Source: Schizochytrium sp. TIO01 (Eukaryota > Protista > Bigyra: Labyrinthulomycetes). From it: a stretch of DNA of 64,000 nt. Both the position numbers and the translations under genes were made by a program. The notes under the pieces were generated by a model. The model saw only the letters and a list, made by a program, of their open reading frames with translations. It ran no database searches and was not told where the DNA came from. The stretch is taken from positions 372,001 to 436,000 of the forward strand of contig SMSO01000034.1 of the NCBI GenBank assembly GCA_004764695.1. Direction: 5' to 3'. Position 1 is the first letter of the stretch; every line of letters starts with the position of its first letter. Of this stretch, positions 56,487-63,368 are shown piece by piece.

Positions 56487-59400
56487 TTAATCTAATTTGA
56501 ATCCAGCGCCGACAATGTCGGATGTTAACAAAGGCGCAAGCTGCTCCAGCAAAGCACTTCGAAGAATTCGGTCATGAATGTTTGTACTCCAGTAACTACG
56601 TAGACGCTCGGCACGCAAGAGTTGCCACGCGTGTTGAACCTGTTCGAATGAATTAGGGAAAACTCTTCCTTGTGCAAGATTCTTTTGGCATTTCCTCACA
56701 TGACGATGACAAGCTTCGCTATCCGTGCTACTATACTCAAGACACCATGCACAAAAGTGATTATTGCATGAATCTCTACTGCATGCCACAGCACAACAAC
56801 CATCAAAGAGCCCGAAGCAAGTGCCGCAGTTTGGGCAGCATATATTCAAAATCTTTTCCTGAATGTGCTGCAGGTGCTGTTTTATGTCACGGGCCAAACC
56901 ATCCGCCTTAAGAAGCTCCGCTACGCGTTTCTCAATCTCTTGCTCAGCTTGAGTTGCAACTGCAATCTCAGTCTTCATTTTCACAATCAACAAAAGATTA
57001 TTCAGAGCGTTTGGCGCAAGCCGAGCAACCTCTTGCACTGAGATTTTCCCCATCACATCCAGGTTTCATGCATGCCATCGTTCCATCTGCGGCGATGATT
57101 ACATGTGCTTGCGGTTTTGCGCCAGCTTCTACTGCGCGTTCGATACAGTCTTTACAAAGGAAGTCTCCCTTCTCACAACTCGTACTCTCGATAAGCGGTT
57201 TTTCCTCCATACACACAAGACAGCTCTCCACAGGAATCTCAGCAACTCCGAATGCACTATGCCGAAGTGCCTGTCGAGCGCTTGGACGCTGACCAGGGGC
57301 CGTTGCTGTGAGACTGTCAATCAGTGTCTGCATCGCAGTGCTTCGCTCAGTGGGATACAGGTCATCTAAGACTACACCCACAGAGTACATATCCATTGCT
57401 GGTTTCGAATTTATCTACGGGCCCATCCTGTAACTCGGGGGCAATATACCGAGGCGTTGCTTGAAGAGACGTGTAAGTTACTGTTCGATTTGCAACTTTA
57501 ATGCCGTCAAAATCACCAATCAATGGTGTTCCGTTGCGTGTGAGGAAGATGTTCTCTGGTTTGATGTCGCAGTGCACAACCCCATGGTCGTGTAAATCTG
57601 CTACGCCTAGAAGTAGGCCTGTCGCAAGACGATCACGAGATGCTTTGCCTTCGTCAGGATAATCTTGAATCCAACGCGCTAAGTCACCTTGCTCGTAGAA
57701 AGGCATAACGATGCAGCCACGCGGTGGGACTCCAGGTGTCATGTCGATGAAAGCACCCCGAATATGTATTACGTGTTGGGAAATCACGTGCCCTAGATTT
57801 GCAACTTGTTTATAGAATTTCTCGGACTGACCTGAATGCTCGAGCTGAAATTGCTTTATAACTAGGGCGTTGCCATTATCATCAAGAACCTTTTGTACCG
57901 TCTTACCGCCTCTAGAAGCAAGAGGCTCCCCAACAGGCTGGAAGTCTGTGATTTCGACATTCGCCAACCAAAGATCTGAGCAAGCCACTTCGAAAACACC
58001 CTCTGTACTTACATGTAGCCTTTCTAACCAGTCTTCGTCCTTCAGTAGCTCTGGGTAGTGTTCTTGTGCGTGTTGCAGAATTTCCGCAAGCTTATGACGA
58101 TACACTTTACTCAGCTCAATAGGTGTCCCTTTGGATAGGATTTCCTCTTGTTTCGCGATTCGATCTCTAAAGTATACTCGACCATCCTCTGTTTCCTCTT
58201 CTTCAAGGTCATGTTTGGCTCTTTTTAAAATATTCATTGCCTTTCGTGAAGCAGCAAGTGCCTTCTCAATTTTCTCAATTGTTGATAAGTTCGGTTTGAT
58301 TGAACCCAAACGGATGGAGACGTACATCGCATCGAATTCTTCTCGCGAAATGATACTGCCCGGTTCAAAATTTGTGGTATTTCCATCTAAGTTTTCAACA
58401 CGACAGAGTATTGAGTTGATGGCCCACAGTATCTCCAATGCCTCAGCTGCAACTGCATCTTCTTTCAGGACTTTTAGCTCATCTCGAAGAGCCTTTCGAA
58501 GCTCCAACAGCTCATGCTGCAGTTCTGTGGCCTTTTCGGGCGTCCTGAGGGCAACGCGGAATGCGTTGTCAAGCCCTAACTGAGATACCCGCTCTATGAC
58601 GTTTTCAACCGCTTGTTTGCTTCGTTGCTCAGCTGTTCCACCTTCCCCGCTCAACTTCAGCTTGTATTCTTGAATGCACTTATCCGTCCGAGCAGCAAGT
58701 TCTTGGCAGTGTTTGAAATCATCTGCAGCTGCATTTTGAGTAGCTGACACATTACCGAAATTGAAGTACCCTATCGAACTTGCAAGTTTCGCTTTGAATT
58801 CGCGTACCGCATTCTCACCATCTCCATCGCTGCCCTCACGAATCCAGGGATGAACGTCTTCTAGAAGTTCTCGTAGGAGTTCTCTTTCTGCGTCCCGAGC
58901 CTCGATGAGACCGGACAAGTCAACCTGAGTACTTTCCCTAATTTGATCTTGCAAGTTCTGCAAGCTTTCTTTACATCTCCTCATGTTACCAGAAACTTGT
59001 CGCAATTTAACTTGCCCAAAGTAGTTTTGAACTGCCGGTCCTATGAACTCCTCCAGCAAAGCAACCCTGGCGCTTTCTCTCCTCTTATCAAGGCTATTAC
59101 GAAAACCTGCAATCTCCTCGGCGAGTTGCATCACATCAAAGAAGCTTGCATTGGCGCCTTGCTGTAGTCCTAATTTCGGAGACGCTGGCTCCCTGGCATG
59201 AGTGCTCTTCATCTCTCTTCGATTGCTCTGCCGCCTTCTCCCAAACGTAAACGCGGGTCCCTGAGATGCTGGCACCGTATCGACGAAGTTTATGTTGACT
59301 CTCTCCTTGATTTCTTGGAATGAAAAACCACTGGACGCAGCTACTCTCTGGGAAGAGCTCACCGTGTCTGGAACGTTTGTATTTCCTCTGTCTCCTGATG

Positions 59401-62400
59401 GGAAAATGTACGTAGCTACTCCAAACGAACAGAGACTTGGCGATGATTTCCTGTGGAAAGTTTGTCCTACCGTATCGATGAAGTTTATGTTGACTCTCTC
59501 CTTCATTTTTTGGAATGAAAAACCACTGAACGCAGCTACTCTCTGGGAAGAGCTCACCGTGTCTGGAACGTTTGTATTTCCTCTGTCTCCTGATGGGAAA
59601 ATGTACGTTTCTCTCTCTATATCTATAACAAGCCCGTCTAACCAGCCTTGGAAATCTACGTCTGGGGAATTGATGTCCTCTCCAAAAAGGCACACCTTTG
59701 CAAACAATTCTTCAGGTGTTAATAAATGTTTTTGAATAAAACAGGTAAATGCCAATCTGCGACTGTTTTGGGTGTCACTTAAATCACACCTGCGCCACGT
59801 TAATCAAATTAGCAGAGCATCTGTTAGAATCAAATCAGCGCATGAGAATGTGGTTAACCTCAGAACTTCACCGAGGATCAGAGAAACACAGGTAATCCTC
59901 TGTTGAAAAAAGAAGCGCTCACAGATGGACTCGAACTTACCAGATTTGAACAGAAGGACACGTTTGGTGCAGTGTCTTGGCAAGGGACGAAGCACCCGCA
60001 AAGCCGACGTTGTTTCCATCAAAGCTGTGAGTGACCATTACACGTTAAATAGTTGCACAAATTGGTCAGATATATGATAATGACAATGCTTTTTTATAAA
60101 AGCGCTTTCAAAAGATTTCCGATTTCCTTCTTTCATTCTCTCAGAATGAAAACCTTTCTGCCAACGAAACGTACTGTAGTATTTTCAGATTTTTGCATCT
60201 CTTTAGCCCTTTTGCAAGGGCCTTGGCGCCCTCATCATCAACTCTATTAGAGGAGAGACTGTGTTGTTTGTGGTTTGAAATGAAAACGTCAGCCAGGCGT
60301 TGTTAGTCTCAATCATTCTTGTACCACCACAGAACACGATGTCGCCACGACACCTAGGTCCTAGATATTTGCAAGCTGAATTAGATTTATTTTGGCATTT
60401 TATGATACTCTCCACCCTGATAAAGCTGCGAAGTGCGTGAAAGCTTCTTCAAGTTGTTATCGATCTCCACTGCTACTAAAACGCGAGCAAACGTGCTGGC
60501 GATGAAACGTACTCTAGTGTTGTCAGATTGGTGCAGCTCTTCAGCGCCTCAGCAAGAGCTTTCATATCTAGTCCACAGTAGCCAAATAAAGTACCAGAAT
60601 GTTTGAGTCTGTGTGATGTAAAATAAATGTCAAAGAACCGTGAGACAAGTCAGTTGGTGCTGTTCATTCGTGTAGATCACTCAAATCAACACTTGAATAC
60701 GCTTTGCTGACTGTTCTTCAGTGTCCGTATTTGTCATATACGTCAACTTCGGTCCTGCCGGCTTATTTTAAATCTAGGTGTGCATTTTGATCTAGTATAG
60801 TGGGAATACAAGATAGGTAAGATGAATGCGACACCCTTTTGAGAGTGTTGAGTCCACTCCCATTGCTTCTGATGCTTATGAACGTACTCTAGTGTTGTCA
60901 GATTGGTGCAGTTCTTCAGCGCCTCAGCAAGGGCCTTGGTGCCCTCAACGCCAATTCTATTAGAGGAGAGACTGTGTTGTTTGTGGTTTAGAAATGAAAA
61001 CGTCAGCCAGGTGTTGTTAGTCTCAATCATTCTTGTACCACCACAGAACACGATGTCGCCACCACACCTACGTCCTAGGTATTTGCACGCTTAGTTGGAT
61101 ATGTTGTGGCATTTTATGATACTCTCCACCCTGATACAGCTGCGAAGTGCGTGAAAGCTTCTTCAAGTTGTTATCGATCTCCACTGCTACTAAAACGCGA
61201 GCAAACGTGCTGGCGATGAAACGTACTCTAGTGTTGTCAGATTGGTGCAGTGCTTCAGTGCCTCAGCAAGGGCCTTGGTGCCCTCATCATCAACTCTATT
61301 AGAGGAGAGACTGTGTTGTTTGTGGTTTGAAATGAAAACGTCAGCCAGGCGTTGTTAGTCTCAATCATTCTTGTACCACCACAGAACACGATGTCGCCAC
61401 GACACCTAGGTCCTAGGTTTTTGCACGCTTAGTTGGATATGTTGTGGCATTTTATGATACTCTCCACCCTGATACAGCTGCGAAGTGCGTGAAAGCTTCT
61501 TCAAGTTGTTATCGATCTCCACTGCTACTAAAACGCGTGCAAACGTGCTGGCGATGAAACGTACTCTAGTGTTGTCAGATTGGTGCAGTTCTTCAGCGCC
61601 TCAGCAAGGGCCTTGGTGCCCTCAACGTCAATGCTATTAGAGGAGAGACTGTGTTGTTTGTGGTTTGAAATGAAAACGTCAGCCAGGCGTTGTTAGTCTC
61701 AATCATTCTTGTACCACCACAGAACACGATGTCGCCACGACACCTAGGTCCTAGATATTTGCTAGGTTGATTAGTCTTGTTTTGGCATAATGTGATACTC
61801 TCCACCCTGATAAAGCTGCGAAGTGCGTGAAAGCTTCTTCAAGTTGTTACCGTTCTCCACTGCTACTAAAACGCGAGCAAACGTGCTGGCGATGAAACGT
61901 ACTCTAGTGTTGTCAAATTGGTACAGCTCTTCAGTGCCTCAGCAAGGGCCTTGGTGCTCTCAGCGTCAATGTCGTTAGAGGAGAGACTGTGTTGTTTGTG
62001 GTTTAGAAATGAAAACGTCAGCCAGGTGTTGTTAGTCTCAATCATTCTTGTACCACCACAGAACACTATGTCGCCACGACACCTAGGTCCTAGGTATTTG
62101 CTAGGTTGATTAGTCTTGTTTTGGCATAATGTGATACTCTCAACGCTGATAAAGCTGCGAAGTGCGTGAAAGCGTCTTCAAGTTGTTATCGATCTCCACT
62201 GCTACTAAAACGCGAGAAAATGTGCTGGCGATGAAACGTACTCTAGTGTTGTCAGATTGGTGCAGTGCTTCAGCGCCTCAGCAAGGGCCTTGGTGCCCTC
62301 ATCATCAATTCTATTAGAGGAGAGACTGTGTTGTTTGTGGTTTAGAAATAAAAACGTCAGCCAGGTGTTGTTAGTCTCAATCATTCTTGTACCACCACAG

Positions 62401-63368
62401 AACACTATGTTGCCACCACACCTAGGTCCTAGGTTTTTGCACGCTTAGTTGGATATGTTGTGGCATTTTATGATACTCTCCACCCTGATACAGCTGCGAA
62501 GTGCGTGAAAGCTTCTTCAAGTTGTTATCGATCTCCACTGCTACTAAAATGCGAGAAAACGTGCTGGCGATGAAACGTACTCTAGTGTTGTCAAATTGGT
62601 ACAGCTCTTCAGTGCCTCAGCAAGGGCCTTGGTGCTCTCAGCGTCAATGTCGTTAGAGGAGAGACTGTGTTGTTTGTGGTTTAGAAATGAAAACGTCAGC
62701 CAGGTGTTGTTAGTCTCAATCATTCTTGTACCACCACAGAACACTATGTCGCCACGACACCTAGGTCCTAGGTATTTGCTAGGTTGATTAGTCTTGTTTT
62801 GGCATAATGTGATACTCTCAACGCTGATAAAGCTGCGAAGTGCGTGAAAGCGTCTTCAAGTTGTTATCGTTCTCTACTGCTACTAAAGCGCGAGAAAGCG
62901 TGCTGGCTGTGAAACGTACTCTAGCGTTTTCAGATTGTTGCATCTCTTCAGCGCATCAGCAAGAGCGTTCATATATTGTCCATCGAAGAAGGAGAAGGAG
63001 GAACCAAAACCAGAAGCGTTTCGTCCGAAGGAACCGAAACGTGAAGCGTTGTGTCCGAAGGAACCGAAACGAGAAGCGTTGCTTCTGAAGGAGGAACCAA
63101 AACCAGAATTGTTCATCCTGTGTGATGTTAAATAAATGTTAACAAGCCGTGAGACAAGTCAGTTGGTGCTGTTCACTCTTGAAAATCATTCCAAATCAAC
63201 ACTACAATACGCTTTGGTGACTGTTCTTCAGTGTCCGTATTTGTCATATACGTCAACTTCAGTGCTGCTGGCTTCTTTTAAATCTGAAGAGATTGCTAAT
63301 CTAATAAGCACTTACATCACCTCCGTGGTGCTCTCACAAATTTCCTCGATTTTCTTTGCCGTGAGCAT
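56487..63368 (-). CDS. 12-exon LRR - helical/coiled-coil - protein kinase - RING1...RING2 (RBR-like) protein, ~1439 aa; two +1 frameshifts in last exon
   Basis: Exons (minus strand): 63368-63316, 63117-62920, 62664-62581, 62325-62242, 61986-61903, 61648-61565, 61310-61227, 60971-60888, 60608-60513, 60258-60175, 60024-59941, 59789-56487. All introns are GT-AG phase 2, and the spliced frame runs into the 59755 ORF. Kinase: VIK, HCDIKPEN, DFDG, APE, DMYSVG. Cys modules: CLVC...C...CKDC...CMKPGC and CPNC...DGC...C...C..HFCAWC. Confidence 0.85.
59274..59608 (-). repeat. In-frame internal duplication (~140 bp, offset 195 bp) in the LRR-kinase gene
   Basis: YIFPSGDRGNTNVPDTVSSSQRVAAxSGFSFQxxKERVNINFxDTV occurs twice (59469-59608 and 59274-59413). 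Confidence 0.95.
60175..62990 (-). repeat. Tandem array of 338-339 bp units, each one 84-nt LRR exon plus a conserved 254-255 nt intron
   Basis: Exon 3' ends at 60888, 61227, 61565, 61903, 62242, 62581, 62920 (spacing 339/338/338/339/339/339), plus a further unit at 60175-60512; introns near-identical. Confidence 0.97.

Follow-up and report, generated by a model that had tools for sequence, protein, structure and literature searches.

A family of cassette-built LRR-kinase-RBR-like genes in the thraustochytrid Schizochytrium sp. TIO01, with a divergent and probably disabled member outside the ribosomal DNA and subtelomeres

Introduction

The closest described systems are the LRR-ROCO and LRR-kinase genes of Ectocarpus (Zambounis et al., 2012, PMC3341825; PMC11378527), which, like the genes reported here, are found in a stramenopile, encode proteins described or (here) predicted as cytosolic and carry one leucine-rich repeat (LRR) per fixed-length, symmetric exon. 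Both sets of genes share a variable repeat number, pseudogenes, clustering, diversification of the LRR exons and a candidate immune role. Here we describe a gene on the minus strand of a 64,000-nt stretch of the Schizochytrium sp. TIO01 genome (the window; positions 372001-436000 of contig C33, SMSO01000034.1, in the 64-Mb, 37-contig assembly G000, GCA_004764695.1), in which single-repeat LRR exons are joined to a kinase and to a module resembling RING-between-RING (RBR) ubiquitin ligases. On balance, and judging from sequence, we favour the reading that the gene is a genuine member of a large thraustochytrid family that evolves by birth and death, and that the window copy, which is divergent and lies outside the ribosomal DNA (rDNA) and subtelomeres, was most likely disabled recently.

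Thraustochytrids are ecologically and industrially important, and we know of no immune or recognition system described for them. In Aurantiochytrium limacinum, subtelomeric tandem repeats of 366-529 bp situated by 5S and 18S-28S rRNA genes have been published as non-coding elements, LORE-TEARS, with a presumed role in chromosome maintenance; Group 5 of these, with a unit of ~421 bp, lies between 5S genes (10.1101/2023.06.15.545109).

Results

Gene model, gene family and a paralogue transcript

The gene runs from 63368 to 56487 as 12 GT-AG exons with a total length of 4322 nt, which becomes 4320 nt, or 1440 codons, when two extra bases are discounted. A first-pass annotation, made from the letters of the window, had proposed just such a hidden 12-exon spliced gene, with the same sum once two single-base insertions were removed and with a TG/G junction at the 59789 acceptor yielding W-CDLSDTQ... 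We recomputed the exon table from the sequence; the GT-AG borders and phases agreed, the sum was the same and the junction was present. All internal exons are of the form 1+3n+2, with phase 2 at both borders, preceded by cag and followed by gtacgt or gtaagt, and each one can therefore be gained or lost in frame.

The window gene belongs to a family of at least 60 loci in this genome. A 189-aa piece of its C-terminal tail gave 93 matches in the same assembly, the best paralogues being 60-62% identical. Among 67 strong loci, 52 lie in open frames of at least 875 aa and 15 in shortened frames. The architecture had been put forward as an unrecognised combination; it is no one-off, given this family and the kinase-plus-tail proteins of other protists described below. 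In each of the six main-type paralogues that were fetched first, an array of 84-nt LRR exons preceded the long exon on its strand, and the number of LRR exons varied between loci (6, 7, 8 and 12 were counted). In a divergent subfamily (L020-L022 and L033) the introns are ~90 nt long.

For one paralogue, L022, the LRR-kinase-RBR-like architecture is real at the RNA level. A profile of the tail was compared with 1.84 billion protein cluster representatives and matched 3761 proteins at E <=0.001, 439 of them at E <=1e-30. The cluster of the best match (P0142) includes P0292, a complete 1240-aa open reading frame (ORF) of the MMETSP0960 transcriptome, which carries LRR_6 (E 1.4e-33), Pkinase and the tail. 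P0292 maps to L022 (G000:C13:1148000-1157999) as a 20-aa first exon, eleven LRR exons and a 912-aa terminal exon; the eleven 84-nt LRR exons match exactly, each bounded by ag and gtaag, and the terminal exon is 99.6% identical. One-LRR exons are therefore spliced to a kinase-RBR-like exon in this organism or in one very closely related to it. The header of the transcriptome (TAXON_ID 87120, P0293) points to the fungus Rhizopogon burlinghamii; in view of the 99.6% identity to this thraustochytrid genome that assignment cannot be right, and the metadata are probably in error.

Of the best 59 proteins found with the tail profile, 28 carry Pkinase and 4 LRR_6, and others have ankyrin, WD40 or helicase domains. 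Kinase and tail are combined in proteins of Hondaea and of the ichthyosporean Sphaeroforma arctica; in Phytophthora and Pythium, proteins carry the tail alone. The module thus extends beyond the stramenopiles. The S. arctica record P0217 (XP_014152813.1), named as a serine/threonine protein kinase, is a 1907-aa protein ending in the tail. A further record with the tail, 2161 aa long and named as a PRP43 helicase, comes from an insect (P0184, Pseudolycoriella hygida KAJ6638803.1) and may reflect contamination or a faulty gene prediction. The closest public protein to the window copy was P0143 (73% identity over the kinase), and none was near-identical. A protein search with the 797-aa ORF of the last exon gave no match at E 1e-20, its search words having been drawn from the low-complexity N-terminal part. 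Full-text literature searches returned no paper describing an LRR-kinase-RBR-like family or a kinase-RBR fusion.

The exons of the window copy are as follows.

63368-63316, minus strand: exon 1, 53 nt; ATG, MLTAKKIEEICESTTEV plus 2 nt, donor GTAAGT, phase fitting exon 2
63117-62920, minus strand: exon 2, 198 nt; decapeptide repeats rich in Gly, Ser, Phe and Asn, then a first half-LRR ...ALADALKRCNNLKTL
62664-62581, minus strand: exon 3, 84-nt LRR exon (LSSNDIDAESTKALAEALKSCTNLTTL); LRR_6 E 0.2 alone
62325-62242, minus strand: exon 4, 84-nt LRR exon; LRR_6 E 5.7e-4
61986-61903, minus strand: exon 5, 84-nt LRR exon, identical to exon 3
61648-61565, minus strand: exon 6, 84-nt LRR exon
61310-61227, minus strand: exon 7, 84-nt LRR exon
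60971-60888, minus strand: exon 8, 84-nt LRR exon
60608-60513, minus strand: exon 9, irregular 96-nt cassette without the LxLxxN start; in-frame skipping possible
60258-60175, minus strand: exon 10, 84-nt LRR exon (LSSNRVDDEGAKALAKGLKRCKNLKIL); LRR_6 E 4.1e-4
60024-59941, minus strand: exon 11, 84-nt terminal LRR exon (...ASSLAKTLHQTCPSVQI, ending in TG), donor GTAAGT
59789-56487, minus strand: exon 12, 3303 nt including the stop; linker, helical region, kinase and RBR-like tail, in three frames

Exon 11 matches in type the final LRR exon of L018, a paralogue (...ALHKACPSVRI). The search for homologues of exon 2 in the fetched paralogues gave nothing useful, and an ATG at 63116, at the beginning of exon 2, offers an alternative start. 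Within exon 2, a 30-bp tandem repeat (62999-63108, minus strand, 3.6 copies) encodes the decapeptide repeat (NASRFGSFG...) that precedes the first LRR and is probably a disordered N-terminal segment.

LRR cassettes in the window and in the paralogues

Exons 3-8, 10 and 11 are phase-2/phase-2 exons of 84 nt encoding 28-aa repeats of the ribonuclease inhibitor (RI) type, LxxLxLxxNxIgxxGaxxLaxaLkxnxx. Six of them lie in cassettes of 339 bp (84-nt exon plus 255-nt intron), which Tandem Repeats Finder detected in 6.2 copies with 92% matches at 60881-62963; a repeat search added a seventh, displaced copy. The proposal that the repeats are RI-like, with one LRR per exon as in Ectocarpus, held up: each symmetric exon encodes one repeat, and LRR_6 was the sole Pfam family matched by single exons, with E from 4e-4 to 0.24. 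As the Pfam repeat is cut by the exon border, every one of these matches is partial and falls short of the threshold by itself.

The window array was built by recent tandem duplication of the cassette. The six cassette exons are near-copies of each other, with exons at 91.1% identity and introns at 92.9%, so that exons are not better kept, and codon differences among the exons comprise 39 synonymous and 53 non-synonymous changes. The cassette of exon 9 derives from exon 2 and its upstream intron, intron 60620-60745 repeating 63140-63260. A comparison of 60513-60860 with 62920-63285 (minus strand) showed that the LRR array holds, in its middle, a copy of part of intron 1 and of a shortened exon 2, which gave rise to the irregular 96-nt exon 9 and to a 714-bp spacing in the cassette series.

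A 339-bp array could also be a non-coding satellite, its apparent exons being chance open frames. Similar arrays in a related species have indeed been published as non-coding spacers with no similarity in GenBank (10.1101/2023.06.15.545109). Against this, each unit in the window holds 84 nt between cag and gtacgt, in one phase and with an open LRR_6-like frame; exons of the same type are spliced in the transcript of L022; and the arrays always precede the kinase-RBR exon and share its strand. We regard the satellite explanation as effectively refuted.

In the paralogues the cassette period is ~425-430 bp, and 5S rRNA genes were found 200 bp to 3.5 kb downstream of the tail-bearing gene in four of eight loci scanned.

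L018:1-3942: LRR cassette array, 430-bp unit, 9.3 copies, 95% identity
L017:296-414: 5S rRNA gene, downstream of a tail-bearing gene
L013:1306-1424: 5S rRNA gene, downstream of a tail-bearing gene
L015:1755-1873: 5S rRNA gene, downstream of a tail-bearing gene
L027:8445-8563: 5S rRNA gene, downstream of a tail-bearing gene

Variability among 42 LRR exons of the main subfamily was focused on positions 2, 3, 25 and 26 and on the split codon. These are x positions of LxxLxLxxN, on the predicted concave face of the repeat, and the scaffold was almost invariant. In the window array the same four positions are nearly constant. The variable LRRs that had been suggested are thus seen in the paralogues, with their hypervariable predicted binding face, and the window copy shows little such variation.

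The family may be real and yet have nothing to do with recognition or immunity, its copies multiplying passively through segmental duplication of subtelomeres and rDNA spacers while the proteins serve ordinary signalling or proteostasis. The position of the loci fits such a process, since 25 of the 67 are found no more than 100 kb from a contig end, against an expected share of about a tenth, and 5S genes accompany half of the loci scanned; the cassette introns are also as conserved as the exons, as concerted evolution alone would predict. Passive duplication does not, however, predict the focus of variation on the binding face, and the kinase is of the non-RD type (HCD), a feature that has been linked to pattern-recognition signalling. 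We consider this explanation possible, though on the unlikely side.

The last exon: linker, helical region and kinase

Exon 12 is spread over three frames because of two insertions of one base. Its parts upstream of the tail, and the insertions themselves, are listed here.

59606-59275, minus strand: in-frame tandem duplication in the linker, ~193 nt (TYIFPSGDRGNTNVPDTVSSSQRVAA... twice), where paralogues have an intron
59113-57956, minus strand: all-alpha region, ~386 aa, between the LRRs and the kinase
57940-57253, minus strand: kinase domain, non-RD Ser/Thr type (HCDIKPEN, DFD, APE), split by frameshift 1
57400-57402, minus strand: frameshift 1, one extra base, GAAAC[C]AGCAATGG, in the kinase C-lobe
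57044-57051, minus strand: frameshift 2, one extra base, GATGGGGAAAATC, in the run GGGGAAAA, at the end of RING1

The helical region shares 50% identity with that of L017, and its AlphaFold2 model is all-helical, with a predicted local distance difference test score (pLDDT) of 72. A search of PDB sequences with this region gave no match below E 0.01, and Foldseek gave no fold match below E 0.1. An alpha pore-forming toxin was tried as an assignment and rejected, since the best Foldseek matches had E >=0.14 and TM <0.25.

The kinase that had been suggested was confirmed by Pfam, with Pkinase at E 2.7e-21 (76.6 bits against a cut-off of 31.7) over residues 618-775 of the 797-aa ORF; the end of the C-lobe follows in the next frame (Pkinase E 0.036). 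The motifs read HCDIKPEN, IGDFDG and YIAPEL, and the Gly-rich loop is atypical (SRGGKTV). Pfam searches of the 797-aa ORF and of the frames of divergent paralogues found neither NACHT nor NB-ARC.

The RBR-like tail

The tail was analysed as a module of 257 aa through an alignment (A2) of 17 diverse copies from this genome. In the window copy it is made up as follows.

57222-57048, minus strand: RING1-type finger, C-x2-C-x11-C-x3-D-x2-C-x2-C-x24-C-x4-C, matching ARIH2 residues 134-208
57043-56841, minus strand: helical linker, ~60 aa, in the position of the in-between-RING (IBR) domain
56840-56688, minus strand: Rcat (RING2)-type finger, CPNC...GCCAVAC....C...FCAWC...H...C, the Cys after the Gly (56798-56796) being the candidate catalytic residue
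56687-56490, minus strand: C-terminal helical extension, conserved, ...RAERLRxYW...PLLTxDIVG

The family consensus of the first finger is C-x2-C-x11-C-x3-H-x2-C-x2-C-x24-C-x4-C, and the window copy has Asp in place of His. Residues C14, C17, C29, C36, C39, C64 and C69 are invariant in the 17 tails, with the consensus His between C29 and C36, and the stretch aligns to RING1 of parkin as well as to ARIH2 134-208. The second finger reads C142-P-x-C...G154-C...C160...C165...F-C170-x-W-C173...H187...C191; together with the following helices it aligns to ARIH2 296-396, the ARIH2 sequence GGCNHMQC lying opposite G-C-C-A-x-x-C of the tail. Two divergent paralogues, L027 and L026, have lost the Cys that follows G154.

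When the A2 profile was compared with PDB sequences, ARIH2 was the best match (E 1.4e-4, in two collinear stretches), followed by ARIH1 and parkin and, very weakly, by RNF216. The AlphaFold2 model of the tail of an intact paralogue (pLDDT 85) showed two small zinc-finger-like domains joined by a helix of ~55 residues, a single helix spanning residues 83-137, and Foldseek matched this model in the PDB to RNF216 (E 5e-5), then to HOIL-1, HHARI and parkin. No Cys/His cluster corresponding to an IBR was found between C69 and C142 across A2, Pfam IBR and IBR_1 were below threshold on the tails of this genome (best IBR_1 E 0.0077), and no Pfam family, RING models included, reached threshold on them. 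The two Cys/His modules had been called RBR-type; RING1 and Rcat bear this out in the profile and fold comparisons, and the IBR is absent. We therefore describe the tail, from its sequence and predicted structure, as an IBR-less RBR-type module (RING1, long helix, Rcat and helical tail) and a candidate ubiquitin ligase.

The same 257-aa tail ends other proteins of this genome (L025:6327-8612, plus strand; L026:3991-8658, plus strand; L027:5957-8245, plus strand; L024:885-3758, minus strand). One of these is a 1556-aa superfamily 1 (SF1) helicase (AAA_11/AAA_12, with a ZNFX1-like layout), one carries a PDZ domain, and in several no N-terminal domain could be recognised; two of them have Asp or Gly in place of the Cys at the catalytic position.

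State of the window copy

The gene had been expected to yield a protein of 1439 aa. As assembled, the window copy cannot make this product, because two +1 frameshifts interrupt its last exon. The sites were compared with six paralogues for the first and nine for the second. At the first, the window has ACCAGC where four paralogues have ACAGC[AG] and two more have ACTGCA and ACATCC. The three ORF pieces are collinear, end to end, on intact homologues (on P0001, residues 2-554, 555-668 and 670-853). Taken by themselves, the frameshifts indicate either a young pseudogene or assembly errors.

In a tree of the family, the window copy fell inside the clade of long-intron genes (support 100/100) on a solitary long branch of 0.57, with at most 59% identity to other members, and by these measures no member of its clade is more divergent. 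Its neighbours are single-copy genes and not rDNA, and no rRNA or other Rfam family was found in the window. A second family member, L030 (G000:C33:358062-358613, plus strand), lies 14 kb before the start of the window and is broken, with a TAA stop inside the tail and an open frame of only 362 aa. In the linker of exon 12, paralogues have an extra intron after the exon 'CDF...TPKELFERVC..GEDI', where the window copy reads through and has a 54-nt insertion besides the duplication. Divergence, frameshifts, homogenised LRRs, the irregular exon 9, the read-through and duplication in the linker and the broken neighbouring copy together favour a recently disabled copy, and the window gene is probably a pseudogene.

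Several observations weigh against this assignment. Both extra bases fall in short homopolymer runs (CC and GGGG/AAAA), which are typical sites of error in long-read assemblies, so that assembly error is a serious alternative: the gene and family would be the same, and the copy intact and functional. The three frames keep all conserved Cys and His residues, the zinc ligands among them, and the kinase motifs; ~1100 codons are otherwise intact and stop-free, and ~1440 open codons have been kept despite the long branch, from which the gene may in fact be whole. The read-through of the linker is itself assumed: candidate GTGAGC donors and acceptors for an internal intron were tried and set aside, as they gave out-of-frame products. 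None of the fetched paralogues shares the sequence of exon 1, for which the ATG, the donor and the phase speak, and L022 has an analogous 20-aa first exon confirmed by its transcript. On the other side, two errors within 350 nt would be odd when 52 of 67 paralogous 2.7-kb frames and the other long ORFs of the window are uninterrupted, and the copy also shows a homogenised LRR array and an irregular exon 9. We therefore give an intact copy a real but smaller chance than a recently disabled one.

The neighbouring genes in the window, mostly intron-poor and with long ORFs, encode a Na/H exchanger, an acyl-CoA dehydrogenase, MoeA, an M14 carboxypeptidase and an RmlD-like reductase. The exchanger shares 69% identity with its counterpart in Hondaea fermentalgiana, the closest named relative.

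Discussion

In the intact members of the family, a short N-terminal exon is followed by RI-type LRRs, which differ in number between loci, and then by an all-alpha region, a non-RD kinase and an IBR-less RBR-type module. The proteins are predicted to be cytosolic, because the first exon does not resemble a signal peptide and the LRRs are of the RI type. The concave face of the LRRs would bind a ligand and thereby relieve autoinhibition. By analogy with PINK1 and parkin, the kinase would then phosphorylate ubiquitin, a substrate or the RBR module, and ubiquitin from an E2 would pass by way of the Rcat cysteine to a target. Alternatively, the kinase and the RBR-type module may act as two separate outputs. 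Ligand binding, kinase and ligase activity and any immune role of the family are what we infer from these features. The self-contained defence protein that senses, phosphorylates and ubiquitinates, as put forward in the first-pass annotation, is a hypothesis of the same kind.

A recognition or immune repertoire of the kind proposed for Ectocarpus LRR-ROCO genes (PMC3341825) would fit the hypervariable codons of the binding face, the variable repeat number, the pseudogenes and the location at chromosome ends. In its fullest form, the proposal would be that intact members make up a germline-diversified, cytosolic recognition repertoire, in which hypervariable one-exon LRRs sense ligands and the non-RD kinase activates the IBR-less RBR ligase to which it is fused, a counterpart of PINK1-parkin in a single polypeptide; the cassettes would be the published LORE-TEARS, and the window copy would document the birth and death of receptors away from chromosome ends. 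We offer this proposal tentatively and hold it, as a whole, to be rather doubtful.

Aurantiochytrium is known as a host of persistent mirusviruses (PMC12606086). Contigs C1 (289,439 bp) and C2 (275,050 bp) of the present assembly are near in size to the ~300-kb and 269-kb mirusvirus-like elements of A. limacinum, a likeness of size alone.

At least 60 cassette-built LRR proteins with two enzymatic outputs, kinase and RBR-type ligase, would extend the idea of exon-shuffled receptors from brown algae to a heterotrophic stramenopile. The tail would define a widespread, uncurated IBR-less RBR module (439 clusters at E <1e-30, no Pfam model), and a natural fusion of kinase and RBR module would serve the study of how RBR ligases are activated by phosphorylation. 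The data also suggest that repeats published as non-coding chromosome-end spacers may be coding. The window copy, as a divergent, non-subtelomeric and probably decaying member, would be useful for dating the turnover of the family.

The comparison with LORE-TEARS rests on unit size (430 bp, 9.3 copies), a nearby 5S gene and the chromosome ends of a thraustochytrid, in all of which the paralogue arrays are alike. They differ in that the units here read as exon-plus-intron cassettes, and the 339-bp array of the window does not lie beside rDNA. The 430-bp coding cassettes near 5S genes probably correspond to some LORE-TEARS, a correspondence drawn from size and position.

With RBR E3 ligases (ARIH1/HHARI, ARIH2, parkin, RNF216 and HOIL-1), the tail shares the C3HC4-type spacing of RING1 with its final C-x4-C pair, the Rcat pattern with Cys at the catalytic position, the collinear order and a helical extension after Rcat. 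It differs from them in having a helix of ~55 residues instead of an IBR and in its direct fusion to a kinase, and the subclade of the window copy differs further by the change of the RING1 His to Asp. In PINK1-parkin, too, a Ser/Thr kinase is coupled to an RBR ligase; here both lie on one polypeptide, which by analogy suggests activation of the ligase by phosphorylation. No ubiquitin-like (Ubl) domain is present in the family, and the comparison is one of analogy, similarity to PINK1 not having been sought.

Other LRR proteins offer partial parallels. Nucleotide-binding LRR (NLR) receptors and RI-type LRR sensors likewise use the RI-type 28-aa LRR as a cytosolic ligand-binding domain; compared with NLR receptors and other signal transduction ATPases with numerous domains (STAND), the present family lacks NACHT or NB-ARC and has a kinase. 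LRSAM1 also pairs LRRs with a ubiquitin ligase, a simple RING E3; here the ligase module is RBR-type and a kinase is added.

The nearest parallel is with Ectocarpus. There, 72-nt exons encoding typical 24-aa LRRs are joined to Roc-COR or to a kinase, whereas in the present family the exons are 84 nt long, encode 28-aa RI-type repeats (LRR_6) and lead into a helical region, followed by a non-RD kinase and by an RBR-like ligase module, and the host is a heterotrophic thraustochytrid with an otherwise intron-poor genome. The features of Ectocarpus-type cassettes were found in the family, the window copy itself being without the focus of variation on the binding face. From its sequence, we place the family among the cassette-built LRR candidate receptors of stramenopiles, a kind already known from Ectocarpus, in what appears to be a new combination.

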